64,000 nt of DNA from Laetmonice hystrix. Its lineage: Eukaryota. Below the pieces are notes generated by a model that did not search any database, had not been told where the DNA came from, and was given only the letters and a program-made list of their open reading frames with translations. The stretch is taken from the NCBI GenBank assembly GCA_965235115.1, contig OZ249445.1, positions 8,060,001 through 8,124,000 of the forward strand, read 5' to 3'. Positions 6,001 to 28,262 of the stretch are shown here, piece by piece; the stretch's first letter is position 1; the number at the start of each line of letters is the position of its first letter. The translations under genes were made by a program, and so were the position numbers.

Positions 6001-7304
6001 TGTGGAAATGATCACAGCAAATGTCGTAACACGCCCGGGAGGCTGTTGGGCAGATATGAATGATAATCTATATGGATGTCATTCAGCTAGATAGAAGACA
6101 GAAACTCTTTTTATTACATAACGCGACTTCCGAGTTTCCTTATAAAATGTCGTTTGGAAAGAAAATATCCTTCCTTTGTTGACTAAAGCCAGCATTCATA
6201 AGCTATTCATCATCATCTCAATATTCTGATCAGCAGAATCTCTGTGCTCGTTTTCACATCATCCACTACAGTGGTCCTAAAACAATCGAACAGCGCAATC
6301 TTCATGGATTGGTTGACATAAGCCAACCAAACCGTCTGGGAATTATTGAATTAGGACCACGTCTGCGCTTGTTTGCCGCTTCCTTTCAATGGTTGATAAG
6401 ATTACAGCAGACCTTCCCTCAGTTCAGGCGAAACCACCCTCATCTCATGCGACACCATTTTTAACCAGAACAGTTATTTTTCGTTCTCTTGCCTCTTATT
6501 TGTATGCCTATCTTAAAATTCTTCCGCTAATTTAAATTGTCGGAGAGGTCTTACAGTTCAAGAAATGATGTCGTGCTATCTTAGAAATTACATATAATAT
6601 TATTTCAGGTTCGCTGAAGATTGTCAACGCCATACGAAAACGTAATACTATCAATTAATTTTCACCCCCTGAGTCATTCTCCTAAGTTTAATTTATTTTC
6701 ACACACAAAAAAAACTTTTATTTCAATTTTTGAATATACAATGTAGTTACTACGGTACTCTGCCCTGCTGTGGATTAAAATGGTTGAAAAAAAAGCGTAT
6801 GTAATTAATAGCAGCTGTAGCTTGGAATACATTAAGTTCTTAAGTTCTTTGGTTATTCACATGTGCTGCTGTGTCTTAGTTGACTAAAGCCTACTAAGGG
6901 ACACACGAATGGCAATATTGCTCACTTGAATATTGAATAGGTTAAAGCAACATGTTTTATACTGTGAAGAATAATAAATGATAGGCTGGCTAGTTTTCCT
7001 CCAGGTTATTTTCACAGGTGTACACTACACATTTCTGATGTAAGATGTCTTCATATAGTTCTCATCATAATGTGTAGGAACACTGACGGTGTGGCCTACC
7101 TTGTTATAGATAAAACACATATAGTGGTAGCCTGGGAGTTATAGCGTGGTACCTCGTATACTCACCATGTCAGTCACCCCTTTCCCCAAACACGTTCCCA
7201 GCTTCCGGCTGACTAAGGGACTACGTCTCAATTAACACACCATTATTATCGTCGCATATCTCACCTTGTTGGGATGGGGAATGTAAAATTGGTTTAGAGC
7301 CTAT

Positions 7305-7335
<31 letters not shown>

Positions 7336-10300
7336 TCAGTATGACATCATGTTAGGTTACAACTTTTCGCAATATCAATGTGGAAAACGCGGTAATGTTT
7401 TTGATGACAAGAGATCTTGTACAGTTATTTAAAGTATACAAAGTTGTGTCTTTATTACATAAAATAAGTCGTTCAAGAATAAAAATCGGCACAGCCCGTA
7501 GGACTGGCAGTTTTACTGGTTTTATTTCAGCTCTTATCTACACACTAGCAGCGCTTCAATGAAAGATATATTGAAACAATTTACCAAGCTGAATGGACTT
7601 AATTGTCCTTAAACATGCCACCCCCATACTACTTCAGAGAAATATCAACTTGAGGTGAAGTGAGGCTATTCATGTTTTTGCCGCCAGGGGCCGCAGTGAG
7701 CATGCTCCAGCGCCAGTTGACACACGCTGAGAAGGCGCGGAGAGCCGAGGAACAGATAAAACGGGAGATCACCAGTGCTGCCACCTGGTGAGACTTCTAA
7801 CAACTACTGGTTCCCTTCATTGCACTTGATAGGACACCATGGGGTACCCCGGACTGACAGGCAAAGGAGGGGCAAGGTGCAATGGGGGTGTTGTTAAAAT
7901 CTGTACCTAGAAAGGCCATTTTATATCTATGATAAGCATACTCTTGAATAATCACTGAATTCAGTTAACCTTCTCAGGCATTTTTGAATTTTGGAGTCTT
8001 TTTTGATTCCCAGAGAAATAGATAGGGCGATGAGATGGAAAAAAGGTGGCTCTCAACTGTTCTTTTTACCTATGATTTTTATATTTGAAGTGCCCGAGGT
8101 CGAACTGCGAGCACGACCCCGCGGTATGTGACGGGGCGGAGGTTGTCACCCCTACGGAACCCCAGCCCACACAAAACTGGTCTTAGGGAGATAAAGGGAA
8201 CTGTGGGAACCAGATCCCAGGACAACAGGGCCGGCTCGGCAGGCACCAGGAGGGGTGAGTATTTTTGTTTATATTCTACCCCCCTGACTTGGATTTATTT
8301 TTCATGCAGTCCTGGGTAGAGGTCAAGCTCATAAAATACAAATATTTAGAGCCCTATATATTTTCATTAATCAAATCCCCAAATAAGAGCAGCTATACTA
8401 TTTTCTTGAACAGGTCCTTCTGTGTGTTTTACTGCTCGGTTTATTTGCCATTACCTAGAAACTCGCAGAAACTAACTCCCAAGGCTGGTCATTGTATTCC
8501 AGGTGTGGCGTCCTCGACCCCGGTCAGTGGGGCGCGGGACTCACAGGTCCCGCTTACCATCCTGGGCCTGGACCTGGACGACAACCTGCACCAAGTCAGG
8601 TAGGTGGACGTTAACTGGGGCGGGGGGGGGGGGGTAGCAGGTATCACCTGGTAACCCGACACCCCCTCCTACTGTAAGGTGACGTCATCACACCCCTGTG
8701 GTGATCGTGGGTAGGGGTTATACTGACCCCTGAGAGCAGCATGCCTAGGCACGCCGGTCGCCCAGCCATTGTGAATTTATGAATATTAAATACACAGGGG
8801 TTCCCACAGGGAATTAGTGTTGATAATCATGTATAGGCGGACTGGCCATCTGTCGGCCTAACACAGCGGTCAGACACACCATTAAAGTCCGTGCTCTAGT
8901 GGAGGAGTGTGGTCCTTTACCTGCTGCCCAGGTTAGGATAGGGCTGGTATCATTGGTACAAGGTTTTGAAACTACTAAGCAAAATTTTTCATAGAATTTG
9001 CATCAAACTTCACTTTGGGAAGTTCGTTTAATTTAAAAAGTTGCTTACATATTACATATTGTACGAGGATTATCAAGGATTTCTGATATCGTACAAACTG
9101 GTGGGGTTCCAGGGTGAAGAGGATAGCCAAAGGTCCCGTTGGCCAACTACTTTCCAAAAAGGGCCAGTTTTGTCGAAGTTTTTCATCGGAGTCAGCAGCA
9201 GAGCAAGATGACCTTTACCTTAAAGGTAGGCAGAGTACTCTTGTCTTAAATATTCATATTGTCTCTAGATTTGTATAAGTAGGGTTATCCGTTTCTTCCA
9301 CTTGCACCTTCAATAGTTGTCTTGGATTACTTTGGTTATTACATGTTACCACGTTTTAATTTTCATTGTAAGGCTCTCAGAATTACAATGTTGCAATTTA
9401 GAATTACAATTTGAATAACAATTTGATGACTAAAACTAACCGAGTTTGACACTGCGCCAATGCCCACAGCGATGTCGTCAGGCAAGGCCTCTATGACGAC
9501 CCTGAACGATGATTGGGAGGACGTGTCCATCCTATCCACCTCCCCACCCCGCCTGACCCCACTCCGGACACCGTCCGCCACCTCCGACAGACGACTGCAG
9601 ACTATCAGTGAGGTCAGCGGCTCCCAACGGGCACCCTACATCCTAGACCTAGGTACTTCATCTCATCTCTCTCTTCTGTATACTCGGTATTTCTATTATA
9701 TATCAGTTGAAATTGTTAATACAATATCTCCCTAATAAAACAGATTACACGTGTATATTCCCTAGTAAGTCCAGCATGGGGTTTGTATTTGCACACTGGA
9801 ACCCTAACAGTGATGTTAGCAATGATCATTGTGAGATATGATTTCCCGCCACAGACCAGATGCAGCTGGGCCAGCCGCAGCAATCGCCAGCGTTTGGAGA
9901 GGGTGTGACCTACCAACACCCGTACTCAAACCTTCTCCTGCCTCCGACCCCCGTCTACATGACCAACGGCGAGTACCTGTACCCCCAACAGGACGTTCAC
10001 GTCACAGACCTCCAACACTACGACCTGTCAGCCAGCTCAAAGGTCAGTCAGTACACTCCCGAACACATTTAACACAAGACAGTGGCAGATATAGATTTAA
10101 AGGAATCTTAAAGAGAGAGAAAACAAGATGTGCCATAGCTAAAGTAAGATGTAATCGGATTTCTGCTACGGAGCCTCAGCATGGTTTGCCAAGTCAGCAG
10201 ATCAAATGCTTCCACCGATATCTTACAGAAATTGTTTTCTTTTAGGAAACCTCCCCACGGTCTGATGAAGACATTGAGGGTGAAGAGAAGAATGTAGCAG

Positions 10301-13300
10301 AGGAGGACAGAAAGAAGGGGTCCCAGTGTGGGGAGGTTCAGCTAGCGGTGACTAACGTCCAGGATTTGGTGCGGAGTAAAAGTGTCCTCAATCAGGGTAA
10401 CTTTAACATCGAGACGACCAGGGTGCGACATTCGGACGACAGTGGGTGCCCGGAGGAAATCTCCGGCTCTAATAGGAGCAGCTTTACCTCCTCCAGTAAC
10501 TCTTCCCCGGATAGTGACCAGCACGGCAAGCAGGAGCACTCCAGGCCTGGTGATAAAAAAACAATATCTCCCTCCGGCGTTAGGAAGAGACAACAGGACA
10601 ATAGTGGGACAATGAAAGAAGCTGTCCCAGAGGCTAAAACTGTTGGAGCAAAGCAGGTGGAGACTAAAAGTGGGACTCCAAATAAGACATCACGGAACGG
10701 CACCACCAAACTACAGCAGGTGGCAAGAGACAATGCTGCCCAGCAGAATAAAACACGGAATTTACAACCCACACAACAGGTCTCACAACAAGTACCAAGA
10801 CCATTTCAGAGTCAACCGCAGAATCCGAGCCAGGGAAAAAAGAATTCACCATTAAAAAACCAAGTAACTGTGCACTCGCCCGCCTTAAAAGAAACCATGA
10901 CAACTGTAGATTCTTCTCAGGATATCAACTCACATGATGCAAGCACTTCATCAAACCTAAATACATGTATTTCTGAAACTAGTCAAGCTGTCGTACCAGG
11001 TTTAGGGACAAAATCCGCTGCTGAGCCTGCTAAGGTTCAGGTTAAAGTGACTGTACAACACACTGCAAGGTCTTCTACCTCATCCAGACCAAATCATGAG
11101 GCACAAACTGTGAAACAAGCAGCACCAGCTTCAGGTGTACAAATTCTCCATAAAACTACTCAGGAAAATTCACCAAACACGTCTAGCCCTCAGAATTCAT
11201 CAAAAGCCTCAGCAACTCAGAGTCAAACAAACACTCGCCAGACTTTGGTTGATAAAAAGGCCATGCCAAATAATTTCCCTGGTGATCACCAGAGGGAGCC
11301 ATCACCTGGCCACCCTCCGTCAACTGAACCTTCCATGAAAGATTCCGAGTCGTCAGGCTCCCGAATTCCTCCTCCACGACCCGCGGCCCCTCCACGGTCC
11401 CGCACGCCATCAGCTTCCAGCCTCTCTAGCACTGGTTCCTCCACTAAGGATGCTCCACAACGGCCTCCTCCACCAAACAAAGGTAAATCACCACTCAGCA
11501 AGTCAACCAGCTCTCCCGGCAGCAGCCCAACTAGCAACAAGTCGGGAGGACCCTTGTCCCGGACAAACAGCACACCATCACCTCACACCAAGGGGATCAA
11601 GTCAAAAACGGTTTCAGAAACCACAACCTTCAGGCTATCAACCTATCTCGCTCAGAAGGAAGCAATGGTGGGTAAAGCAGAGTCGGAAATCGGGAAAAAT
11701 GAGAAGCCGTTTCATAAAGAAGGGAGATCTACGGAGTTCGCCACCTCAGAGGCTGTTGCTGCAGGTCAGCCACAGAAAACCCCAGCAATCATTCTCACCA
11801 GCCAAAGCCAGACCCATTTCCACCTCACGGAGGCACAGGAGCCAAAGAACATAGATGAAAACCCAAAAGACAGGAGAACTGAGGAAGTTGTTACAGAGAA
11901 GCCACAAGTGAAGCAAATACAAGTGAAGGAACATATGAGTCCCGTCAACAGTGCGGCCCTTGCCAAAGAAAAGGGAGAGAGTCCGGGCTGGAAATCTCAT
12001 CCCACAAAATTTGTAGAAGCTACCTCCTTAGATGCGAAACCAAACCAGCCAGAATACAGTGGGCCCGTAATATGGGACCCCTTTGAGGCCCTTAGAGCTC
12101 AACAGAAACCACCTGAAAACGACAATGAGGAAAAATCTGGCAACTCACGAACCAAATCAGCCAGGACTAAAACACAGACTAAGAAAAAAACAATAGATCG
12201 TCAGTGGTCAGTTACAAGAGGGACTACAGGGTCGACATCAAAAACTAAAGACGGAAAACAAGCAAACAAAAAGGGTGCTCGAAGTCGAAGTCCTCGTCCA
12301 AAAAGCCCTCGATCGAAAAGTCCCAAAAGGGTCAAAATAAAGAAAGGGAAGAAGAAAGGTAAAAAGGAGGACCAGGTAGAGGTGCTGTTGTCCGAAAAGT
12401 CAGACCTTTCAAACGTTGCATTTATTGGAGGCCTTGGGTGGCAGATTGCGACGGAGTGCAATGAGCAGGATGACGTGAAACCCATCCGATTCCGTCCACC
12501 CATTTACCACTCATCTGACGATGACGACCCGACCCCAAGACCCAAGGTCCTGCCCAACTACCTCGATGACGATCCCACGCTTACAAAATTACTTCTCTCA
12601 GACAGACGTGAAAAGGGGCAGATGCCGCAGCTTCTGCAGCTTCCAGGCCAGTTGAATTTTGGCATGTCTGACACAACAGACTCTGAATCTGACATGGACG
12701 ATGTAGAGGAAATGGTCGATGAGGTGGTCTTTCCCCTGAGTACCTCCAATGATGACATCACCCCTCGGGTTGTGAACGGGACACTCGTCTCCCACCCAGA
12801 CAGCTTTATTCCCTCTCCGAAAGCAGTTCTCCATACAAGTACAGATCGGGTAAGTGGAGAAGAGGATGATATAGTTCCGGAGCAGGGAGAAGTTGTAAAA
12901 CAATCTCGCTCATCTTCCTCCAAGCATGAAGATCTCGGTGAAGCTATTGAGGAGAGTGGGCTGCCGGACCAGCCCGAGGATGAGTTGTCTGATGGGGAGC
13001 CACCACCATTACTTCCATATGATAAAAAGGGAATGATGAACGTCGCTTCATCCCACAACAGTGCCAAGTCGGCAGGTAAAACAGGAAAATCCCCCAAAGC
13101 AACCGCAGTAGTGTCACCAAAAGTCTCTCCCAGTACATCAACAAAAGCCACACCCAAGGCTACACCAAGCACTACACCTAAGACAACACCAGGGGGGTCG
13201 CCGGTGAAAACAAAGGGTTCCAGTTCCACCAGCCCGCCCCAGGCTCCTCCTCGGAGACAAAAGGCGGGAATAAAGGGACAACCCGTTAAAAAGACACTCG

Positions 13301-16300
13301 ATGGCACGACTTCAGAGGCTTCCAAAACAGTCGAAAAGGGAAAAAGCAATACGCCTAATAATGCGGCAGACAAGGGCAGCCAAGTTACCAAAGCTGAAGA
13401 TGCTCAAAGCCAGAATAAAGGGAAGACTGCTGTCAGTGGAGATGAAAGCAAGGGCGAGATTCCTGCAGGACCTGGGCCTCCCCCACAGGTGCCAAAGAGA
13501 AGGTCCTTCAAGGAAAAACAGGAAAAAAAGAAGGTTGTTGAAAGAGACAAAAGTCATGCTGCTAAATCTGATAATCCTGATGAAGACCCTGAGATTATAG
13601 CAATGATTGATGAAATCCTCAAATCTACACCACATCCATCCATGTCGTTGTCGCTAAAATCAACAAAGAGTTCCAGTGGTGACCCGGACCCTCCCCGGAG
13701 TGAAGAGGAGCTCCTCAGGATGTCAATCAATGCTAGGAACAAGCTAGAGGCGGAGCTTCAGAACAGCCAGAATGGCCGCATGTTCTGTGAAGTTCCCGTA
13801 CAGCAACCTGACGGTACCATGGCCCCAAGAGAGAAGATGGACAAGGAGAGAAGCCATGAGCAAGGGCCTTTGTCGCCACAGGAACAGGAGGAACTCAAGA
13901 AGATCGTGAACAGCCTCCGTAAAATGGAACTCACTGTTGGCTCCGACCAAACACTTGATTTCCACCAGGACGCAAAACTAAAGACACAGGCAAAGAATCA
14001 GGACAGCCAAGATTCCGCCCCAACATCGTCTTCCAGAGATAAATCTGGCACCTTGGACCATAGCAGTACCAAGAAGCCGCCCATACCCCCCAATGCCACA
14101 TCTTCCTCAGGAAAACCTTCCCAGGAGAGTTCTCCACCAATGGCAATGGACAAGTCCCCGAGGTTCATCAGAAAACTCAACAGTTGGAAGGACGACAACC
14201 AGAAATATGCAGTGCCTCCAGGTGACAGTGCCAAGGAACCAAAGGTAAGAATGGTTTAGGCACTCAATAATGTATCAACTGTGAGAAATTTCCAATGAAA
14301 ACGACTTCTGGCAGTCATTTGTACGCATTCATAGAAACTGCTGGCCCGTTTCCAGGTCGGATTTGCGATACCTACCACATTTTATTGGTCATGTCTCACT
14401 GCAGCAAAGAGATTTCCTGGGCCCTGGGAAGGAAATCTTTTGCATGACATGCTTATGTACGTTTCTAGCTAAATTTGGTACTTCTCAACAATGGCCCGAA
14501 CTTCAATCACGTTTTCTCAAGAGTCCAAGATAAATCCAATCCTATACGAGCTCCTATGGTTTAACCGTTCTTAGAGGCCAAGTGATTCAAATTGAGCATG
14601 AAGAGAAAACTGCAATAAACTGGTTAACAGTTGTGTTCAGAATAAGGTGACTCGGAGGGGTGGTAAAATACTGTTGTAGACACGCAATGCGTGCCAGCGG
14701 CCAGCTACTGGTATATAAAGGTGTGTAGCTCTCGGACCAATTAGTCTAGAGTTGGCAGAGGTTGTGGGAGCTAGAGTTTGGAAGTGAAGCAGAATGGAGA
14801 GATTGATGGATGATTACGATGGTGTGTACGAGCGGTTGAAACCCCTTCGCTGGGAGCGGAGGGACTCAGGGTTCTGTGACTCTCCCGACCTGCCTGACCT
14901 CAGCACCTGGGTAAGTGTGGGTTGGTATGGACGACTCACCAACAGCCAACGTTATATGAAGGCAGTTGGTTCTGGTGGAGAAACGTGCCGCAAACAGACA
15001 AACTGACAAATTTATCACACGAGACACTGAGGGATAGCTGGGTCTGAGCTCACCATGAGCAGTTCACCACATGATTTCCAGCCAGAGATTACTGTAGTCT
15101 GACTGTTGCTGCATTATGTTCCAGGATTCCGATACTTTGACTGATCTGTCACTGGTACACTCAGAGATTAACTCTGATACTCTGAGCGTGGCTTCTGGAT
15201 TCACGGATCGTGACGACAGTATGGTTCCTACCGACGGAAGGGTGCGTGTCAAACACTTACTCACCATCACATTGTATATCGATCATCAACCTACTAACAC
15301 AGACAAGTCAATACATCCTGCCTTAATTGTCAGTTCACTCGGCATGTTTCCATATTTAAATCTCTGCCCAAATTTCCTGGCAATATTCTATGTAGTACCC
15401 GTACGACACTAACCCTCTCCTTTGCTGTGCTAAGTTAAAGTTTCTGACATGTGCTCGTCCTCGACAGATGCTGACCAGTCGGCTGGGCAGGCCCAGCTCG
15501 GTATGCCGTGCTGCTAGTGCTGCTTCAAACATCGATTCAAGCTCGGACGAACATATCCAGACGATACAGTGGAAACGAGGCAACATGCTCGGGAAAGGGG
15601 CTTATGGAAAGGTATGCATAACGTTCACTGGTCTGGAAGAGAAGCGGCCCTATTTCACAACTTCAAGTAACAATATTCATTTTTCAAACCAATGCTAACA
15701 ATACCTGGTAAATGGTAATTGCAGGTATGGTGTGGGCTGACCAATGGTGGCGAGCTGATAGCAGTCAAACAGATAGAACTCAACATCAACGACATGGAGA
15801 AGGCCGAAGTGGAGTATGAGAAAATCCAGGAGGAGGTCGAACTCCTGAAAACTCTCAAGCACCGAAATATTGTCGGGTACATGGAATTTTCATACATAAA
15901 AGGAAATGTGTTATTGAATATATGGCAGTATCCTACACTAAACGTTTCAGTACTTTGAATAATAATTATACAAAACAGCTATATTTACCTTCTTTTCATA
16001 AATGTTTGATATATGTGATATTTTAACATAAACCAAACAATCACTAAGGTATTCTAAGGACATGAAATATAACACCTCAGGCATTAGAGAAGTTATCCTA
16101 ACTGTGTTACGGTTGACTGGCTAACGGTTGACTGGCTAACAGTTGTGGACATTGCACTCAGTGAACCCTCAATGACTTTCTCCAGGTACCTGGGCACCAG
16201 CCTGGAGGACAACATGGTGAGCATCTTCATGCAGTTTGTGCCCGGAGGCTCCATCGCCAATCTGCTGGCCCGGTTTGGTGCCCTGGAGGAGGAGGTTTTC

Positions 16301-17285
16301 TGCCATTACACCAAACAGATACTGGAGGGCGTTGAATACTTGCACGCTAACAACGTTATCCACAGGTGAGCCAATACTCCAGTAAGCTGGGTCCTTCAAC
16401 TACCAGGAGTAGACTGCACAGACCGTGTGATGGACAGATAGTGAGAGATTTGGATCCCATGGTGCAGGCACACTTTGTGTATGCTCATTTCTTGAAATTG
16501 ACCAGTGAAGTGTGACTTCTCACAATCTCGAGATCTTTGTTTTGCAGGGATATCAAGGGAGGAAACATCATGCTCATGCACAACGGCATCATCAAGTTGA
16601 TTGACTTTGGTTGCGCCAAACGACTGTGTTTGAATGTCAACGCGCTCAACAGTAGCAACAGTAACCTGCTTAAGTCTATGAGAGGAACCCCATACTGGAT
16701 GGCTCCAGAGGTTGTCAAAGAAACCGGCTACGGGACCAAGTCTGACATCTGGAGCATTGGCTGTACCGTGTTCGAAATGGCAACAAGAAAGCCACCATGG
16801 TATTTATTTCATGTTCATATATCCTGGTACATCGTATTCAATAATGTGTTAATGACCAGAGAAAATCCCAGGCCATGTTGAATTCTGTAATGAGGTAACT
16901 TATTATAGGATAGGAACTCTTTACGGGGTAGTCGCACAGGACAGTAGTTGTATCATCCCATTGTAACCGTATTGTGATCTGAACGGATAGGCCAACCAAA
17001 CGCTATTACTGCGAGTAGTATATCAAAATGAGAGTTTTTATCAGGTTACTGGGTCTACTACCTCTGGTACTAATAGTCTTTTTTTGTACCACTAGGGCTG
17101 ACGTGCCACCACTGGCCGCCATCTTCGCCATTGGCGCCGACCGGGGGATTCCTGAGTTACCTGGGAAGTTCTCAGGAACCGCCAGAGACTTCGTGTCCCA
17201 GTGCATGACTAGAGACCAGAATTTGCGACCGACCGCCACCGAGCTTCTCACACATTCATTCATTGTCAACAAAAAACGAAAGTGA
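3..17285 (+). CDS. MAP3K19: Ankyrin-repeat-containing MAP3K19/YSK4-like STE-family kinase (multi-exon, 5' end outside window)
   Basis: Phase-compatible GT-AG exons: <3-119, 516-644, 1856-2044, 2225-2382, 2558-2673, 2961-3100, 3251-3529 (ankyrin repeats, e.g. GNTPLIWAAKRGH, GRTPLHYVS, FTPIHCASQSGNVDVV, GTTPLHISAINGH); probable linker exons near 5391-5439, 5635-5711, 7689-7787, 8091-8254, 8504-8599, 9180-9220, 9440-9650, 9850-10043; large low-complexity exon 10246-14247; then 15125-15241, 15468-15611, 15725-15876, 16186-16365, 16548-16799, 17096-17285. Kinase motifs: LGKGAYGKV, IAVKQ, HRDIKGGN, DFG, GTPYWMAPE. WKRGNMLGKGAYGKVWCGLTNGGELIAVKQIEL closely resembles the MAP3K19 kinase start. Confidence 0.85.
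645..1670. repeat. 29-bp minisatellite (~35 copies, consensus CACAACCACAATCAACCACCATTCTCAGA) in an intron of the kinase gene
   Basis: Tandem units are directly visible. The 349-aa ORF 637-1686 repeats every 29 aa (3 x 29 bp), as expected for a 29-bp unit read through all frames. Confidence 0.95.
14712..14910 (+). promoter_or_regulatory. Putative internal TATA promoter and alternative first coding exon of the kinase gene
   Basis: TATATAAA at 14712-14719; ATG at 14794 with an in-frame TGA at 14785; 39 codons ending in TGG|GTAAGT at 14910, phase 0, compatible with the exon at 15125. Confidence 0.55.
15468..17285 (+). CDS. MAP3K19: Ser/Thr kinase domain exons of the MAP3K19-like gene
   Basis: Five exons join in frame to give a complete kinase domain (Gly-loop, VAVK-type Lys, HRD, DFG, APE) ending ...FIVNKKRK* at 17285. 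Confidence 0.92.
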
Positions 17286-19490
17286 TGGAGGAAACACATA
17301 GGATCTCATATTTTCTGTTCGTTCACCTCTGTTATATTACATGAGAGATGTGGCCTGTGGTAACACTTAATGGAACGGATATACACGGATATAGTGCGAA
17401 GACATAAGGAAGCACGACTGATTGGGCATATTTTGTTAAGCTCAAAACATGGTCTTTATCCTTAACAAAACAGCTGTGTCAGTTCCAAATGGTCTACACC
17501 ATCCTGGCTAACCAAGGCTGGTAGTCTTCTATGATGAGAAGATGTAACAAATATAACTATGTTACAATTATAAACATGCCAAATGGCAGCATTTCAAGGA
17601 TTTAAAGGCAGAACAAACTCAAGAGGCCCTGTAAAGGTCAACTGCACGGTGGATGGTACAAAAAGAATTGTAGTCAGAATTTTTACTTTAGTTTCCTATT
17701 CAAGAACAAACATTTATGTTGTCAGAAGCTCAATTGCCAGTCAGTGTATACATCATACATGTATGTATGTGCATATGCATGCTAAAACATTTCAAATATG
17801 ATGGCTGTCCAACTCATTTGTTGCTATATGTATGCATAATTTTGCTGTAACTAAAAGATGACGTGTCGTTTGTTGATAGAGCTGTGTTGTTTTGTTCCAG
17901 GATGATGAGATTTCTGTATGTAAATGTGAGGTTTCTGTATGTAAATGTTTGAAACGTGAAACTGCTGATTGCGACCCTTGGATGCTTCAGCATAGCAGTT
18001 GAAACCTATTCTGTAATTACCGGTACTAACAAAGCTGGTTGAACGTCAACATTCCATGTGGATCACCCGATATCAATGTGGTATCCTACACAAGGAACGG
18101 ATTTTACATAGGACAAAAAACAAAACGATTATGAAACCACTGGCATATCTACCTAGGCGTATGGTAAGACAGAGTGCCAACAATATTAAAAAAGTATTTT
18201 TCCAACCCTGCAAGAGATGCTAAGGCCATTCCTCGAGATAGTATTACCGCGGTACGTGTAGTATTGGTGTACCGGTGCACATTTGTAGTTGCTAAAGAGT
18301 TACCCAGTACTTAATTGGACGTTTCTAATGGTAGAGATTTTGTGCATTTAAAGAAAGTTGTCATAAACTGTTATAAACTAAGTATGGCAGAACTTGAATA
18401 AAAATGTAAGCACTGTCTGCATGAAGGCTTTGTCTGAATGTCCGAGGCAGATCATGGCAGACACATCAGGTGAGTTATGAGAGCCCTGGAAGACCCTACC
18501 TACGATAGCCAGATGTCAAGTACAATGTATTGGGTGCAGTAAAAAACGGTGTCAGAAAATGTCCGGGGTAAACGTATGGCAGACGTGACGTGAAAAATTT
18601 AATGCTCATTGTTATTTGTTACAAAACGGTGACGTCTTTCATATGTGGAGCGGCTATTTGAAAACCACGTTTTATGATAGGGTAAATAGAGTGAAATATT
18701 GAAAACCTATGCCAATGTTACAGCTGTTAATGTTAATGTTATGTAGGCCCAACAAGTTCAAGCTCATTTATCTTTTGATAAATACACGCAAACTTTTTCC
18801 TCATTATTCAACAGGGTGTCCGAATACTTTGAACGCCCTGTCCTAGATCTGTCCGGGTTACCTCGTACTGAATTATAACGATTTTTCTCATCCGATGTCG
18901 CATTTCAAACAACCTCTTCTACATTTAAAAAAAACACCTGTGATATAAAATATTTAACAAAACGCCTAAAAGTACATGGGAACATAAAATCTTTCAAAGA
19001 AGTTCACTTGGATCAGGCTGTTATGCGTTGGAACTGTTTACTTCTAGGTGATCCCCATGGCAAAATGTTAGGACCAAGGTCTGAAAGTGAACCGACTACA
19101 CATCATGTATACTATACAATGACCATACAATAGTGTATAAATGTAAATATTGAGGAGAAAGAATTTTGTAATAAACATACGTTTTGATTATTCCTGTCTT
19201 CCTTCACTCAGTATTTTACCCACCATACCCAGTATAAATGAATACAAACCAAGTCTCCAGTTAATTTGCCCTGGGGAAGATTTCCTTTTGACGAAAACAA
19301 ACTCCAGAATGAAGTGGGACGCTGGGTTTTTATGATGTGAAAACGGAGGTGGAAGAATAAGAGACAGAGACCAGATTTTCCATCAGGTACATGTGAGGTG
19401 TAAAATTCTTTACTGGAAAAAAAGATGAATCAGACCGTCTTCGTCTTCAGGACAGATGAATGTGTGCTGAGTACAGCACTGTTTGACTTA

Positions 19491-20351
19491 TATCGGGTGG
19501 ATAAAAAAAAACGCCCCGAACTTTAAACTTCAACATTTCAAAAAGTAATAATTGTAATTCAATGAAATTTTTCTAAATATCAGTTCATGATGTTGTCTCT
19601 TAGTTGTTAATGTTACAACTCAATAGCTTGGATAATATTTCCGTTGCGCTAAAAACAAAAATCATTGTACAAAAGCGTAATGCCGGGCTAAAGCGAGTTG
19701 TAGTCGCACCCAGAGTCCCTGGCCTCACACTAGAGTAGGTGGTCAATCGGTCCCCCGTTTTCACTCCATGCACTGCTCTTAGTCTCTTTTTCCATGAGCC
19801 AATGCACTTCCTGATCTCTGAAAGGGAAATATCTTCCCAACATTGGGAAATACGCAACGTTCTGAATGTGTTGCTAAACGTGATAATGATACGATTTCCC
19901 TTGAACTTCAGGTTACAGTCATGTCGTCCTAATGTTGCAGTTTCTCTGTAGGGTTTGGCACATTAAACATCTGTTTTTCTCTAAAAGTACTAGGAATAGC
20001 ACATATTTTATTATATCTAGTGGTCCACAACATGATACATATTGTAACACATGCAAAAACTAAATATTGAATTTTTTTTACCCAAGGTACAATGCGGTGA
20101 ATCAAACAGGTGTCAAATTGGACATCTGGCAGCTGCATGATATTTGACCTAATTCCGGCATTGCGTTTTTAGACACCGATTTTTGTTTTTAGCGCCCCGG
20201 GATTAATATCAAAGCTATTGAGCTGAAACTTTAACATACCAGAGATAATATGATGAAGTGATATTAAGAGAAATTTTATGGAATTATAATGCATAGTGTT
20301 TGAAATATTAAAGTTTAAAGTTCGGGACGTTTTTTTTTTATCCACCCGATA
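19491..20351 (-). mobile_element. Tc1/mariner-type non-autonomous deletion derivative (861 bp)
   Basis: ~55-bp terminal inverted repeats (TATCGGGTGGATAAAAAAAAACG.CCCGAACTTTAAACTT...), flanked by TA on both sides. Internal minus-strand remnant ISQCWEDISLSEIRKCIGSWKKRLRAV resembles a Tc1-family transposase C-terminus. Confidence 0.85.
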
Positions 20352-20543
20352 TAAGTGCCGAACTTGAGAGCCTTGGGTCTAGAACTGTCAACAATAAACA
20401 TAGAACTATTAACCTATAATACCTGGGCTGACTGAGTTATAGAAGATTGGTTCATCTTTCTCTTAGCATTATGGTCTGCCAGCTGTACTCGTCAGAACGG
20501 CTCGGTTTCTGAGGCCCATGTCTGTTCGACTTCCACTGCTCGG

Positions 20544-20927
20544 TTATTTTATCTTTCCCATCTCATCTAGGTATGCAGCGATCATCTTAGTCTGTAAGAT
20601 TCAAGCAAATACACATGTACACCTTATGAGACCAAACCTATTGTTAATAATATTGACAATATGACTTGGGGCAGATTTCAGTGATAACGTATGGTAATAA
20701 GTATGATAAGTTTGAGTTATCAAAGAACATACCATTGAGTCATCAGTAACATGTTCTTACCCCTTGCATGTAGTTGGTCTTGTTGATTTTCTCATTCTGT
20801 GAGTGGGCGCCGTCGTCGCATGCCCCAATTGGAAGCAGCATGACATTTTTGCCGGTAATCTCTTGGAATGTGAGAGTGACGGGAATACTACACCCCTCCC
20901 GTGTCATGTCAGGGTCCGTCCCATACA
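20544..20927 (-). CDS. CNDP2: Duplicated distal terminal cassette B of CNDP2 (exons 20927-20761 and 20591-20544)
   Basis: Same exon length (167 bp), same phases and intact AG/GT sites as cassette A. Encodes [71 protein letters not shown]. Confidence 0.85.
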
Positions 20928-22370
20928 CTGTCCACACAAATAACGTACACATGTAGGATTATGTCGTATGGGAGAAAAATTATGTATAGAACAAGACTGA
21001 AAGAAAATCACACTTTGACTAAATTGAACTCAGAAAGCGAATGGATACAGGCCTACGGCACTTTGTACAAGGTAATTACATTTTAGCCAGAACGTCTGTA
21101 CGGCATGTAATTACCTCTCCAGTGGGCAATTTTTGGGGTGCATGCCCTTCGGCAGCGACATCTGGTGGAGAGTTTACTCACCAGTTTTAATGGCTGCTCG
21201 ACCAGCCAAGAAATGAGGATGGTTAAAGTCAGTCACCCACGCTTTCGCTCCATGCTGAAGCATGACGCTGCCAGAAATAAAATCATGCCATTTAAACTAC
21301 GTCTACTCATCTGTCAAAAGATGTTACGGACAGTTCTTGTTCCATCATGCATATACATGTATGCAGGATTCCGTCATCCTTTTCCGCCCCATTTTTTCTT
21401 GGGATTTGAATGCAACCTAGGCATATAGAAATCTCTGCACGGTCTCCACTACCGCCCGTGGATAGACTTCAAATAAGATGCGGCATCACTTTAACAACAT
21501 AATGACATATGATAGTGTCAAGGACCTTATTTCTATGAAATAAACTCCCTACTCTAACTTATTTCCTTCTTAGTCTGGCTACTGATGGTTAATCTAATAT
21601 ATGTAAACACATACATAAATTATGTTGAAGACATGCGAGACATTTTGAGTTTACTTAAATTAATCTCACCCTTAGATTGATATCTTGATAAATAAACAAA
21701 ACAAAAAATGTGCGCCTCCGGAGGACTATATTTATTACTCATAACAGTGCATGGTCTGGATGAAGTCTGGACAATTGGCATGGATCATGTTTCAAATATA
21801 GAATCAGGGATAAAGACTAAAGAAATATCTGTACGCGTGTACGGTAGATGGTCTTCTGTGCAAGCAATACCAAACATTATCAGAGATTACTAGTTTCAGA
21901 GATGAATACTCATCTATCCTGGACACCACTGATTAAATGGGGCTAAATGCCTGTTAAAATGTCCAAAAGAAGGCTGGTATCAGTTGGTACGTATAAAGTA
22001 ATTTCTTGTACTTGAAATTCAGAATACCACCTTGAAGAACCCAGTATTTTTACATACTCTCAGAACTAAAACATGAGAATCATCACAGCAATACGACTAT
22101 ACGTCATAAAAGCATCAATATCTTAGCAAAGTCTCCACCTAATATTGGTAGATTATACCGGTAATCAAAGAACTTTTACCTTTGGCGGTGCCTCCGATAT
22201 ATTTCTGTCTCCCCAAACTCTCCCACGTAGTTTAGCAACTACTTGTATTATACTTACTTATAAACCTTGACATGTGTTTTTACATGTGATCGTGATGTTC
22301 ATTACAATGTGAAAGTTTCTTTATTTGGTTGCTTCCATCAGGTTATGATGACGCCTTTTTTAAAGACTAA

Positions 22371-22530
22371 AGGCCGGTTTATAGTCCGTCAGCCGACCAT
22401 CGGCCGACCATCGCTCGACGTCAGGTCAAAGTTCACGCAGGCTTAACTCCCAGCGATCGGTCGGTCGACGGCCGGATCGCTGGACTATAAACGTTCAGCG
22501 ATGGTCGGCCGACGGACTATAAACCAGCCT
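22371..22530. mobile_element. PIF/Harbinger-type MITE (160 bp)
   Basis: ~32-bp TIRs AGGCCGGTTTATAGTCCGTCAGCCGACCATCG / CGATGGTCGGCCGACGGACTATAAACCAGCCT with TAA on both flanks. Confidence 0.85.
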
Positions 22531-22712
22531 TAATACTCGTGAAGATGTCAAATCTCTGTTTAGGCCATGTTTATTGGTAAACTGCTGCCTTTAAGATATG
22601 GGAACTATTATCTTTGCATGTATCGCCCTCGCAACCATCGATTTATGCAGCACCCAGACGGGGATGTCCACCCATTTGCCACAGCACTGATATGATCTGC
22701 CGTCGCATGTCC

Positions 22713-25700
22713 TTATATCCTTCCCATTTCATCTATATACGCCGCCAACATCTTTGTCTGAAAAACACGAATGTAACAAATCCTTGGAATGGAAGAAAGG
22801 TTGGATCTTTTTGGAGTCATTCTAGATATGAATCACTTAAAAAGTGTCAGTCTTACATTGACTATGCAATAAGACACATCACAAGTGCCGTAGCTATTTC
22901 TCTGTGGTATAGAAAACACCCACCCCCTTTAGGTAGTTGACTTTGTTGATTTTCTCGTTCTGGGAGTGGGCACCATCATCACATGCTCCCATTGGCAGGA
23001 GCATCACGTTCTTGCCGGTGAGATCTTGGAAGGTCAATGTCACAGGGATGCTGCCTCCTTCTCGGGTCAAGTCTGGCTCCACACCGTACACTTGAAAAGG
23101 AACCAAGTCCATCTCAGGGTTCATTCCGTATTTCACCTATCCAGGGTTCATATCATAACTATATGCACAATACTGTTTCTCGATTTCGCAAAATAATGTC
23201 TCTGAATTTGGTACTTATCAGAAACATTTTACTTAAAGGCAATTTGTACTCTGTTTTCTATATTTGGGAGTATAAGTCTATTCAGTTTTCATTTTTGGCC
23301 ATCACTCATCATTTTATGTTCACGATCGGTGTTTCATATACATGTATTTCATTTTAAGTAGACGTTGCCAAGCTCACCTGACTTGGTCGCCTTGCGACCG
23401 ACTTGGAAGTGTGGATGGTTGAAGTCTGACACCCATGGCTTCCCTCCGTGACCCATCGACACTCTGTCACAAAGTACACAGATACACAATACATGTACTG
23501 GCAACTACAACTACAAATATGGGCTAGAGCTTTACTTCGTCAACTGTGCCAGGGGCTCTTCAGTACTGCTTTATTTTCATAGACTCAAACACAATATATT
23601 ATGTCAAAAAAAATTTTCTATTTACCTGTCTGCGTGTGCCTTTTACATCGTCTTCTTTTAGGAAAATGACAATCAAACAGCGAGAGCCATAGCATCTCTT
23701 GTTCGCGAAAAAATGCCTGCTTATCTTCCCTTTTGAAACCCGCCTTCATTTTATCACACAACTACTGGTACAACTCTGGCATGTCGGCCATGGTAAAAGT
23801 CATCTGATAGGTATCTTTCTTATGTATCAAAAGTGATGAGGATTAGGCAACACAATCGTGAACATTTGGACATGACATAGCAAATGAGCAGGAAAAGGGG
23901 ACTAACACACAGGAAATTAGTTCTGAAAAGGGCCTATTATTTCTATCAGAATCAAGGGAAAAAATCCACTCACGTCATGGGGTTTGGGCTGCCCCGGTCC
24001 TTGTGGACTTTTTCTAGGAAGGTTTTCACCTGGGCCTCCACGTCCTCTGGGGTCATGTTGGGGACAATACGGACGGAGAACTTGCCAATAACCTTCCTGG
24101 GAATCACTGTCTTGGCACCTGTCCCATCAAATGATCCCTCAATACCTGAAAGTGTACCAAATCCTAAATTAGAACACTCATTAAATCTCTAACATCTCCA
24201 GGTCATCCACTGGCCAAAATTATGTAAGTACCAGTATGTGACAACTGCATGATCCCCCGTTTTTCCTGGTCAATCCGAAGAATCTCTTCACACTGCTTCC
24301 TCCCGAAGTGATCTATTTTGGGCAGAATCCAGTAAGTGACACCTACCATGCAAGGAGAGCGAGGGGAAACGCCATCTGTTCATGAGCAGCTCCTCCTTCG
24401 TTGTCTTGGTGAGGGCCTTGTGGTCCAGGTCAGCCCTGAAATCCTCCATGTCAAAGTCAATGGCCTTGTACAGTTTCTTCTCCTCGTCCGTGACAGGGGC
24501 CACAGAGTCCATTATTCCTGGGATGAGGATGTTACCCTTGGAATCGGTCATTGAACCCATCAGGGCAACCAAGTCGTTCATAGCCTCGTGTCTGTATCAA
24601 TAATCATGCCAATATTAGAATTGATGGCTTCTTCCTGCTTCCCTTTTTTCAGGGGTCACTTTGAACCAACTTTGACTCATATCAAAAGAATCTGAAACCA
24701 TGTGCAGATCTGCCTAGGAATTTTCAAATCTGTGTCAGAGTTAGAATTCTGATTGATTTTAAGTTCTTTCCCAATCTACTCACACTGATCCTCCAAAGAC
24801 TCCTGAATGAAGATCCTTGCAGGCACACTGCACCTCCAGGAAGAAGTAGCAGATTCCCCTGAAGGAAAAAAAACATTACAATCCAGGTTAATAGACTACA
24901 GTACTTTCTATAGGACTCCTTTCAGCAGCAGATGAATAAACATAACCCATAAGTAAGAATATAAAAAGCACCTTCATGTCACGTGTGCACAAACATATAT
25001 GAGGACCTTGGATTTCTGGATTCAATCTTTGTCATAATCTCGGTTGATGAACGGACATGAACTGAAAGACTCCACTCTTATGTACAGCCATTCTGGTACT
25101 CACATTACACAAAGAATTGTTGAAATACATGACAAACCTGAGACCATATGTAATGCAGGGCTTGTTCTTTCCCAGCCAGTAGTTATCAGAAATCATCACA
25201 TAGTCTACATCCTGGAATAATTAGGTACAAGTTTATCAATTATTACATCCATGTTCATGACATCACTTCTTGAAAACTACAATAAATTAAATCAAGTTTT
25301 GGTTGGTTGGATAAAAATGGACAAACTGACCTTGAGGAATGTTTCTTTCCGTGAAGCCAGAAGGTCATCCAGACCTTCAGAACCACTCTCCTCCATACCC
25401 TCAAAGCAGAACTGTAAGATAATGATGAGTACCGGTATGTGTAATCTTACAGGGAATGTACAACACATGATGTAATAAGGTTGACTGGCCAACAATTCTA
25501 TAATTGGCATTCCTAAATCATAATTGTATGATACTTGGAGTTCTTAACTATAGAATGCTGCCACTAATACAGAAATATGTATGTTTAAAATTTGCTATAG
25601 TTATCTAAGGAGATTAGTGGAGGTCTCATAAAAATGGATAATTTAGATAAGATCAGATCTCAGTGTCAAATCTTACCTTGAGATTGATGGGGATCTCCCG

Positions 25701-28262
25701 GCCACACTTCTGGAAGGCCTCAATGGCATGCAGGACCCCAAGTACAGGACCCTAATCAAGGTTAGCATTCATTTAAAGTGAACCACAACTCTGGCACCAT
25801 TAAAGATACATTTTGTACATCACTCAGAGGATGAGAGAACCCCGTCAGCTTTTCAAATCGACATGAGCTTTTTATGACTTATTTTGCACATTAAGTTTTG
25901 CTATCATTAGATACTGGCTAACATCTTTTCCTCAGTCCAGATTACTGTTGTATCGAGTACAGACCACTCATTTTGTGAATCCACTTTGTTCGAGCAACCC
26001 AATTAAGAAATTCCATATTATGTTACTGGCACATTCACAAACCCTACCTTGTCATCAGTGGAACCTCGACCATAGAGCTTGCCATCCTTCTCTGTCAACT
26101 CAAAGGGTTCTGTGTCCCAGCCATCCGACTGGTAAGAGGAGAGAACAGTCACTCAGTCACAATCCTGCTCTATCATATAAATACACTGCACAGGGCAGAT
26201 CTGTATCCTATCTAGCTGTACAAATGCTTTGTGCTGTTTAAAATATGCATCCTTGCACTCATTTAAAAATACTGATAATGCTCCTGTGGTGTGGCTAAAG
26301 AAACATACAATGTAGAGCTCTTAATATGCAGAAGTCTGCTTTTAACAATTTTCCCTCCAAACAGGAGCTGGTATTTCTAGAAGACTGACCTTGTGGGCAG
26401 GTTGTACATCTAAGTGTCCATAGATGAGAACTGTGTTTTTCTTTGGATCATTGCCAAGCTGACTCAAAATGACTGGTGGAAGATCAAGCACTGTTCCATC
26501 AGGAAGTGTTTGTTTACCCACGTCAGCTAGCTCCACACAGGCTCCCAGTCCTTCGAGGAACTGAATAAATCACAAAGAACATATCCTATTACATCAGTAT
26601 TTGCTTTCCTTCAGGCTGGGGGGGGGGGGGGGCACACCAAGCCAGATCCCCCTATTTTCCAAACTCTTACCTATTTTCTATGTTTCAGGTGTAAAAATAA
26701 TGAAATTTCATTAAAAGATTTGGGAGAAATTTCTAATCTGTTCAGAAAACATGTCTCTGGCATTCCTGAACAAAAATTTCTTGGGGTCCTGAAAATGGCC
26801 CACTGATTATCCACCAAAAGATGCCCTTCCCTTTCCTGAAATCCTGGTTCTGCCACTGATAATCTTGATACCAATTTCCTCTAATCATGGATGAAAATAT
26901 GACAACAAAATTGTAACAAAATCTAAGTGGTAGTGTTGCTGACCTAGATGTGACCACTGACTGACCTTGGTTGTGTGTTTGACCTGACGTGTGACCTCTG
27001 AACGTTTATCTGGCCAGGCAGAAACACTCTGAATGGCAACCACCTCCTTCAAACGCTCAATGTAGAGCTTCTCATTGTCATCAATGTACCTGATTGTTGT
27101 CCAAATCAATGAGAACCAAAGAATAACGTTAAAAATATATGTAAAACATGCAACAAAGGCAAAAGGCATAATATACTAGTATTCGGTATTCTTATGGGCA
27201 TAAGGAAACCGAATACTACCGAATCCTGCAGTGGCAGATCCAGGGAGGGGGGAGGGGGCAGTGGGTGTACACCCTCTGCCCCAGGTGCCTTTTTCTCTCC
27301 CCCAAGTGCCCTTTTTTTATTTATATGAAAGATTTTAAAAATTTTAAAATGTCTAGGCCTATAGATCTAGGCCTATTATAGGCCTCAAGGCTGGTGTATA
27401 TAGCGTATTTGGCACTGTAATCTTTTTTTCTGGGGGAGGGCTCCCAGACCCCCCCCCCCCCATCATACAGGATCAATACTACCAAATACCAGGTCAATGA
27501 ATACTACTTCCTTTAAATTTTAAAAATCTTTCATATAAATAAAAAAAGGGCACTTGTGGGAGGGGGGTCCCCCCCCCCCCCCCCCCGGATCCGCCACTGC
27601 AGTATTTGGTAGTATTCCGTTTCCTTATGCCCGGATAACCATATGGTAGTATTCGGTAGTATTTGGTTTCCTTATGCGGTCTTGTGAGCACTGCATCATG
27701 TGATGAAGGTTGCCATCTCCTCATGAACTTGATACAGACAGGACTAAATTGCAAACACCATGCAGCGATAAACCATGGGAAAACGGCTGTTTTAACGCTG
27801 CCTATCATTTTCTTATCCGCTTTCCCATATGCAGCGTCACAATTTCAAACCCAACAAAAAAAACAGCAGACTCTGACAAGAAAAGCCAAACATCCATACA
27901 CTACTATTAACTTACTTATAAGTATAACTATATTCACACATCACTATACTCTCAATAATATCCAGTCCCCTCCCCCTGCCCCAAGAAAAAAAACTTAAAA
28001 AGAAAGGTATTACTGGGGTGGGGCGCGTGCACAGTAGTAGTACGGGGACCCTACGGTATTATATGTCATATGACTCTAAATCTAAACATGGGATGTGACA
28101 CTGATTACACATAACACAACAGTTGACGAACTTGATCTCTGCTCTGGCTCTGCCAACAATTGTACGCCCGGGGCCAGGCCCAAGTCCAAGTTAAAATCCG
28201 TAACAAAATGTTACAAAAGGTACATAAAAAGTATTTAAAACGTACTTGAAGATATCGTCCAT
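22713..28262 (-). CDS. CNDP2: Cytosolic non-specific dipeptidase (M20 family), isoform using proximal terminal cassette A
   Basis: Exons (minus strand): 28262-28246, 27089-26966, 26560-26390, 26128-26048, 25751-25677, 25411-25331, 25211-25138, 24858-24784, 24591-24347, 24145-23974, 23463-23378, 23090-22924, 22757-22713. Metal-binding motifs [32 protein letters not shown] and DDGAHSQNE are all present; ends [14 protein letters not shown]. Confidence 0.95.
27229..27601. mobile_element. MITE-like inverted-repeat element (CAGTGGC.GATCC termini) in CNDP2 intron, nested in another small palindromic repeat
   Basis: GCAGTGGCAGATCC...GGATCCGCCACTGC termini plus an internal inverted segment (GTGCCCTTTTTTTATTTATATGAAAGATTTTAAAAATTTTAAA and its reverse complement). 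Flanks carry inverted GCATAAGGAAAC/GAATACTACC motifs. No clean TSD. Confidence 0.6.

Follow-up and report, generated by a model that had tools for sequence, protein, structure and literature searches.

Two homologous three-exon terminal cassettes, probably used as alternative tails, in a CNDP2-type dipeptidase gene of Laetmonice hystrix

The locus and its terminal cassettes

The DNA analysed here is a stretch of 64,000 nucleotides of Laetmonice hystrix contig OZ249445.1 (assembly GCA_965235115.1, positions 8,060,001 to 8,124,000), in the following called the window, with positions counted from its first letter. Its minus strand carries one gene for a cytosolic dipeptidase of CNDP2 type (M20 family). 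There are nine common coding exons, which lie between 27089 and 23974 and amount to about 365 codons, and after them come two homologous blocks, A and B. The duplicated unit is the last three exons of the gene, which encode 98 (A) or 99 (B) C-terminal residues. The frame of the common exons stays open through either block up to the stop of that block, and we consider it likely that this one gene ends in either of the two, giving two enzymes through alternative tails.

The exon model was obtained by tblastn with CNDP2 proteins, followed by inspection of splice sites. Additionally, four sequencing runs of one sample, in the form of contigs, were placed on window positions 20001-26000. Three of these runs are DNA. 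The fourth, one small run called X4, behaves like RNA in that its contigs leave out minus-strand introns bounded by GT and AG. Its joints, given in the following as pairs of joined positions, cover all modelled junctions from 25677 to 22757, including 23463/23974, 23090/23378 and 22757/22924, at a depth of about 400.

Cassette A opens with exon A1 (23378-23463, 86 nucleotides (nt)), which carries the His380 loop as SMGHGGKPW, corresponds roughly to human CNDP2 residues 377-403 and was found by tblastn and the model, with RNA joints on both sides (23463/23974 and 23090/23378). Exon A2 (22924-23090, 167 nt), likewise delimited by RNA joints, encodes the REGGS loop and the metal-ligand His within DDGAHSQNE, and corresponds to about human residues 405-459 in an alignment that was run with its B counterpart. 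Exon A3 (22713-22757, 45 nt including the stop) is joined to it in RNA at 22757/22924. In the case of cassette B, exon B1 (21182-21267, 86 nt) reads MLQHGAKAW at the His380 loop; it was found by tblastn, is supported by its boundaries and phase, and has an ortholog at 14477-14562 in a locus of a related species (L006, described below). Exon B2 (20761-20927, 167 nt), recognised from its sequence, encodes REGCS and DDGAHSQNE, and an RNA contig (contig 26) appears to cover its last 57 nt. The coding part of exon B3 (20544-20591, 48 nt including the stop) follows, and contig 26 starts exactly at its acceptor, 20591. All these exons lie on the minus strand. Thus the A and B exons compare as 86/86, 167/167 and 45/48 nt, with equal phases and with AG acceptors and GT donors throughout; the B1 acceptor sequence ends in ttatttctggcag. 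The codon split at the end of the last common exon encodes Thr with A1 (ACA) as well as with B1 (ACC).

The initial annotation had described a duplication of the last two exons only. On re-reading, the coordinates, lengths, phases and splice sites of those four exons were correct, as were the motifs (DDGAHSQNE in both copies, REGGS changed to REGCS). The two exon pairs therefore stand, while the extent of the duplication does not, as a third exon (A1/B1) is duplicated too. This also displaces the switch, which had been set at exon 23378 joining either 23090 or 20927, to the last common exon, where 23974 would join either 23463 or 21267. No B copy of the exon 24145-23974 was detected by tblastn with several CNDP2 proteins between 22700 and 21270. 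Regarding the type of arrangement, A and B are frame-compatible with one upstream exon and have separate stop codons, as expected of alternative last exons. In strict mutually exclusive exons one expects homologous neighbouring exons of equal length and phase, which are present, and a shared downstream exon, which is not. Because block A has its own stop and 3' untranslated region (UTR) without a shared downstream exon, we describe the arrangement as an alternative terminal block and not as a strict mutually exclusive pair.

Gene identity and common exons

The spliced A isoform can be aligned collinearly, over 460-464 residues, with CNDP2 proteins from many phyla, the identity being 66-74% and the top match Branchiostoma floridae with 73.7%. 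In Pfam, PF07687 (M20_dimer) matches the exon stretch 24143-23976 with an E value of 7e-7, above the cut-off, and a homologue with 73.7% identity (P0158) shows PF01546 over residues 98-471 and PF07687 over residues 211-369. A Pfam PF01546 search of the species' own genome, which is unsuited to short exons, gave its sole match on another chromosome. The cassette exons match the structures PDB 4RUH, 2ZOF, 3DLJ and 4G1P. Altogether this places the gene within peptidase family M20, subfamily CNDP2 / Dug1, and both isoforms are predicted to be dipeptidases.

All nine common exons lie on the minus strand and were found by tblastn with CNDP2 proteins and the exon model, except where stated otherwise. 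The first located coding exon (26966-27089) encodes YIDDNEK...QVKHTTK. It is followed by an exon with the motif HLDVQP (26390-26560), which we take to be the His101-type metal-ligand motif of the family, and by one with GRGSTDDK (26048-26128), into which an RNA contig reads from its loose end at 25753. Next come the exons 25677-25751 (RNA joint 25411/25677) and 25331-25411, the latter supported by RNA joints and carrying EGMEESGS, presumably the catalytic and metal Glu pair. The assignment of such motifs to specific ligands is taken from general knowledge of the family and not from a structure of this protein. Further downstream are the exon with ISDNYW (25138-25211, RNA joints 25210/25330 and 24857/25137), the exon 24784-24858 (joint 24591/24784) and the exon encoding the lid or dimerisation domain (24347-24591), supported by the RNA joint 24142/24344 (cut +3). 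The last common exon (23974-24145) is supported by the Pfam M20_dimer match and the RNA joint 23463/23974, and its phase-2 donor at 23974 is the proposed switch point.

No start-codon exon was located upstream of 27089 by a simple scan from ATG to donor. The frame of the first located coding exon is open upstream to an ATG (27169-27089, minus strand), by which a hydrophobic N-terminus of 27 residues would be possible, and this may represent an alternative start resembling a signal anchor.

Copy number, age and selection

By tblastn, the cassette exists in two copies only, in the window as well as in the 627-Mb genome. DNA contig depth is equal over A and B and, for each of the three DNA runs, corresponds to single copy in the sequenced sample (about 64, 53-61 and 36). 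The two blocks differ at 29% of their coding bases, and their nucleotide similarity of 74-78% is limited to the three exons, as the introns cannot be aligned. A resemblance of this kind goes far beyond what chance would give. Equal single-copy depth together with this coding divergence excludes that cassette B is an assembly or haplotype artefact. Nothing was found in favour of such an artefact, against which also stands the recurrence of the arrangement in another species' assembly (L006), so that we regard it as hardly credible; the concern had been raised with the first description of the locus, and the depth of about 64 over both blocks answers it.

Over 98 codons, A and B show 53.5 synonymous and 32.5 non-synonymous differences by the Nei-Gojobori method. 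The proportion of synonymous sites that differ (pS) is 0.832 and thus saturated, that of non-synonymous sites (pN) is 0.142 (Fisher p 1.6e-25), and 74 of the 98 amino acids are identical. For the 167-nt exon alone, the corresponding counts are 30.5 and 13.5, close to the roughly 27 and 10 counted by hand in the initial annotation. Furthermore, B contains no stop, no frameshift and no lost splice site in its 98 codons, for which the probability of a random frame staying open is 0.009. The duplication is thus old and under purifying selection, as had been proposed at the outset, and B is almost certainly a functional coding cassette.

Conservation in a related species

A genomic fragment identical to A2 at 52 of 55 residues (P0277) led to the locus L006, which lies in a 2.2-Mb contig of an ENA assembly. 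There, an A block (9533-9618, 10047-10213, 10636-10680) is followed 3.8 kb further on by a B block (14477-14562, 14973-15139, 16064-16108), with exon lengths equal to those of the window and canonical splice sites. In both loci a convergent kinase gene lies downstream of CNDP2. The expectation that relatives would show a conserved duplication was therefore borne out, down to the residues that are specific to B.

Orthologous cassettes of the window and L006 are also saturated at silent sites, so that the two species must be far apart. At the protein level, A orthologs are identical at 88 of 98 residues and B orthologs at 82 of 98, with a pN/pS of 0.11 for B. Residues specific to B and common to both species include QHGAKAW (GHGGKPW in A), AIKT, REGCS and LLPIG. 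Exon B1, conserved at 24 of 28 residues, starts in phase 2, and its L006 version lacks a Met. In L006 the split codon encodes Lys with either A1 or B1 (AAA/AAG). In both species the residue is therefore the same for A1 and B1, as would be expected if B1 is translated after the exon that precedes A1. No conserved sequence or donor was detected past the B3 stop between window and L006; in L006, an AATAAA lies about 95 nt past this stop.

In a maximum likelihood (ML) tree of cassettes, the B cassettes of the window and L006 pair with support of 97/89. In an ML tree with one extra sequence, all four window and L006 cassettes form one clade (99/99). The duplication, judged from these sequences, predates the split of the two species and looks lineage-specific. 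A short ENA contig (P0271) with a B2-like open reading frame (ORF), RDGCS ... LLPIGAC, may represent B2 of a third species.

RNA evidence and 3' regions

Two RNA contigs bear on the downstream end of cassette B. Contig 26 has 229 nt and a depth of 32.1; most of it covers 20420-20591, with its edge precisely on the B3 acceptor. The 57 nt left over fit 20761-20817 and end at the B2 donor, since the sole further X4 depth, in the two bins that follow, is 6.42 = 32.1 x 40/200 and 2.73 = 32.1 x 17/200. This exact depth arithmetic indicates that B2 is spliced to B3 in the RNA of the sequenced animal. The untranslated rest of the B3 exon (20423-20543, minus strand, from RNA contigs and sequence) ends at a GT donor, with an intron from 20422. 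The second X4 contig has a loose end at 20420 that is a unique match to 4731-4760, within a small exon of 41 nt (4723-4763, minus strand) followed by a GTAAGC donor. The intron 20422-4764 has GT at 20422-20421, AG at 4765-4764 and a T-rich tract before the 41-nt exon, all on the minus strand. It runs antisense through a plus-strand ankyrin/kinase gene, and below 4763 the minus strand gave no sign of coding potential. This splice from 20423 to 4763 could be an intron in the 3' UTR, by which B mRNAs would perhaps be prone to nonsense-mediated decay, a read-through product, or part of a separate transcript.

In the case of cassette A, the 3' UTR extends over at least 0.8 kb (21896-22712, minus strand) and is covered by the RNA contigs 22532-22757, 22213-22334 and 21896-22242, which reach about 21896 with a depth of 250-430, similar to the coding contig. 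The initial annotation had pointed to AATAAA signals at 22570 and 22320 after cassette A. These are present (22575-22570 and 22325-22320, minus strand), but RNA passes both at undiminished depth, so that the A transcript must have its main 3' ends elsewhere. The same UTR contains a repeat insertion, an element of about 163 bp that resembles a miniature inverted-repeat transposable element, with long inverted ends (22367-22531). This element is present in very high copy number, with a DNA contig depth of 15,000-57,000 compared to about 64 nearby. Each of the three DNA runs, and the RNA run as well, also yields contigs from which precisely 22367-22531 is missing, so that the sequenced animal seems heterozygous for the insertion. 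On its downstream side, block B adjoins an extremely high-copy repeat (20001-20400, DNA contig depth about 450,000), which masks the RNA signal for the B 3' end.

Thus, of the junctions by which the gene model was to be checked, those of A and the B2-B3 joint are present in RNA, while 23974/21267 was not seen. Several observations weigh against two full enzymes from one gene. The X4 contigs contain neither the junction 23974/21267 nor any contig on B1, keeping in mind that this is one RNA run and that contigs cannot show absence. The B contig stops 57 nt into B2 and no X4 contig covers the rest of that exon. RNA depth over B is about one tenth of that over A, contig depth being a poor measure of expression. 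No AATAAA follows the B3 stop in the window, and at least some RNAs with the B3 exon continue for 121 nt after the stop and are then spliced to an exon lying 15.7 kb further downstream. A search of the protein collection with B2 gave no B-bearing sequence from this species and retrieved A2-like fragments of related species, among them the one that led to L006.

These observations could be accommodated if the B exons were expressed in another transcript, either one with a separate start beyond the A 3' end (transcript starts cannot be read from contigs) or a read-through or non-coding RNA running to the exons near 4763. The long splice past the B3 stop, the lack of a canonical poly(A) signal, the absence of RNA on B1 and the end of the B contig inside B2 all fit such a transcript. 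Nevertheless, all three B exons, B1 included, are under strong protein-level constraint in two deeply diverged species. B1, with its phase-2 start and without a Met in L006, cannot start an ORF, and a lone piece of 98 residues from the split M20 catalytic domain would be unlikely to fold. Nor does the minus strand show coding potential below 4763. We therefore consider a separate transcript unlikely. Another explanation is that B is a decaying, non-functional relic of a partial tandem duplication and that its splicing is noise. The low depth of B RNA relative to A and the missing upstream junction would be in agreement with this. However, silent sites are saturated, yet the 98 codons have stayed free of stops, frameshifts and losses of splice sites, the pN/pS ratios are 0.11-0.19, and L006 has kept the block whole together with the residues typical of B, to which the B2-like ORF of P0271 may add a third species. 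A relic is thus very improbable.

Substrate pocket and metal ligands

The B exons were aligned to human CNDP2 (PDB 4RUH, alignment also with 2ZOF), where B1 corresponds to residues 377-403 and B2 to residues 405-459. The initial annotation had assigned pocket and metal residues to this segment, and in human numbering these are His380, Gly416/Ser417 and His445. The His of DDGAHS, which A2 and B2 share, is residue 445. Residues 413-417 form the loop REG(G/C)S, so that Gly416 is replaced by Cys in B. His380 is kept in B, with changes among its neighbours (Gly379Gln, Gly382Ala and Pro384Ala).

For human CNDP2, docking and molecular dynamics placed bestatin in one pocket of His380 and another of Tyr197 and Gly416, with Ser417 hydrogen-bonding the ligand (PMC12655758). 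The B tail is thus predicted to alter both pocket walls while the metal ligand is kept. Within the human family, the same loop reads R-D-G-S-T in CN1 and R-E-G-G-S in CN2. The preference of CN1 for His dipeptides has been partly ascribed in a review to Thr424 (PMC6271292). From Glu451/His452 in CN1 compared to Ala444/His445 in CN2, which gives an offset of +7, we infer that Thr424 is the residue after the Gly/Ser/Cys position. A changed specificity or a thiol-dependent behaviour of the B enzyme would be a reasonable expectation from its sequence.

REGCS is not special to this gene. Among all CNDP-like sequences retrieved, residue 416 is Cys in 36 and Gly in 323 (about 10% Cys), and REGCS can therefore be regarded as a recurrent natural state.

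Proposed explanation and significance

As stated above, we favour one gene with two alternative tails. In this explanation, the donor 23974 of the last common exon would pair with the acceptor of either A1 (23463) or B1 (21267), the joining of 23974 to 21267 being one that we infer. If 23463 is chosen, the major, canonical 'Gly' enzyme would result, with a transcript ending at its own 3' UTR. If transcription continues past the A 3' end and 21267 is chosen, the whole A block would be removed as an intron, giving a minor 'Cys' enzyme. Each block would supply the His380 loop, the R-E-G-(G/C)-S loop, the last metal ligand His445 and the C-terminal helix. Judged from its residues, the Cys enzyme would be expected to have another dipeptide specificity and might also depart from the Gly enzyme in its metal or redox behaviour.

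Much current work on CNDP2 concerns its roles as the Cys-Gly dipeptidase of glutathione turnover and as the producer of N-lactoyl-phenylalanine (PMC12655758, PMC12975387). Full-text searches found no published accounts of alternative or duplicated exons in CNDP2 or related dipeptidases. What is already known is that RefSeq automatic annotation lists alternative isoforms for amphioxus, an amphipod and a brittle star, and duplicated exons that give either/or isoforms of an active site are a familiar mechanism. New are the terminal block of three exons and the recurrence of the Gly/Cys pattern. If invertebrates routinely splice a second, Cys-416 form, then position 416 and the surroundings of His380 would be natural specificity switches. 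Regarding genome annotation, partial models named 'CNDP2 fragment' may be alternative cassettes.

As for the surroundings of the gene, the plus-strand convergent neighbour (3023-17300) has ankyrin-like repeats, a low-complexity exon of 1303 residues (10348-14259) and kinase exons at about 15468-17285. A kinase neighbour downstream of CNDP2 is also found in L006 and in a further locus, L008, so that synteny is conserved.

Comparison with known systems

Vertebrate CNDP2 (CN2; PDB 4RUH human, 2ZOF mouse) is, like the window gene, an M20 metallodipeptidase, and the A isoform is about 67% identical to the human type over 464 residues. His380, REGGS and DDGAHSQNE are all found in the window gene. 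The difference is that the solved vertebrate proteins have one C-terminal version, whereas the window gene has two alternative three-exon tails. A two-state system at the level of genes is provided by the vertebrate pair CNDP1/CNDP2, which arose by whole-gene duplication. Serum carnosinase and the non-specific dipeptidase are distinguished at the same pocket loop as A and B; in the window, the duplication is limited to the last three exons, and Cys takes the place that Ser has in CN1.

Among invertebrates, the amphioxus 'cytosolic non-specific dipeptidase-like' genes come close. In Branchiostoma floridae (L004), the homologous 167-nt exon occurs twice, the copies lying 50 nt apart (17562-17611), one with REGGS and the other with RDGCS. 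An intron of 50 nt is short enough for steric exclusion, which could explain the use of one copy only. RefSeq isoforms X1 and X2 of B. floridae, B. lanceolatum and B. belcheri differ only at residues 409-461 (e.g. XP_035672399.1 / XP_035672400.1). Branchiostoma thus shares with the window a homologous exon in a Gly and a Cys version. Unlike the window, it has a classic mutually exclusive pair of single exons with shared flanking exons, and its His380 loop and terminal exon are single.

In malacostracans (Hyalella, Petrolisthes, Scylla), the alternative segment includes both pocket loops, with one version of Cys type and changed surroundings of His380, as in the window. Here, one internal exon of 153 nt, present in three copies, spans both loops, so that it is not a terminal block. 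In Hyalella azteca, the RefSeq isoforms X1-X3 differ at residues 382-430, and one of them carries LHSGRHW and REGCS. In Petrolisthes cinctipes (L010), the pocket exon is found in three tandem copies, one of which reads RDGCS. Crab models of 528 residues (L010 13946-14748 in Petrolisthes cinctipes; P0155 in Scylla olivacea) hold two pocket-exon copies in series, and in Petrolisthes the third, Cys-type copy lies directly upstream. These models are probably wrong, the gene predictor having strung together exons that are used alternatively.

In the brittle star Amphiura filiformis, RefSeq isoforms X1 and X2 differ at residues 377-405, which is the His380-loop exon, and in X2 a Glu replaces that His. 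In L009, a locus from another ENA assembly, two complete three-exon cassettes follow one set of upstream exons, the Cys type coming first. In L008, which clusters with molluscs, there are two tandem whole genes with REGGS and REGCS. The Ptychodera flava locus (L005) has one cassette only. A 73-residue 'cytosolic non-specific dipeptidase' of Magallana gigas (P0311, UniRef A0A8W8N5Z2) consists of the last two exons only and has DDCAHS in place of DDGAHS; this could be a further partial copy of the C-terminus or else an alternative cassette. Outside the family, exons 9/10 of pyruvate kinase M are comparable in that exon duplication and either/or use alter a functional site without gene duplication, while the unit in the window is a three-exon block with a stop codon and formally an alternative last exon.

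As to whether the Cys-type cassettes arose once or several times, the unconstrained tree speaks for lineage-specific duplications. Constraining all of them to a single group lowers the log-likelihood by only 4.3 units (approximately unbiased test, p 0.41), so that a single origin is not rejected. As a tentative generalisation, which we hold possible and somewhat less than probable, animals may have repeatedly re-invented a two-state CNDP2 pocket, with Gly416 on the one hand and Cys, or Ser in CN1, on the other, together with altered neighbours of His380. The routes would be a three-exon block in the window and L009 lineages, a single mutually exclusive exon for the 416 loop in amphioxus and for the 380 loop in a brittle star, an exon present in triplicate in malacostracans, and tandem whole genes in the mollusc-like species and in vertebrates. 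Such apparently independent duplications of one pocket segment would be a clear example of enzyme isoforms evolving convergently. If the duplications are indeed independent, the Cys type would represent a distinct, so far undescribed dipeptidase activity, with another dipeptide preference or with thiol/redox control, that is widespread in invertebrates and runs parallel to the split of CN1 and CN2 in vertebrates.

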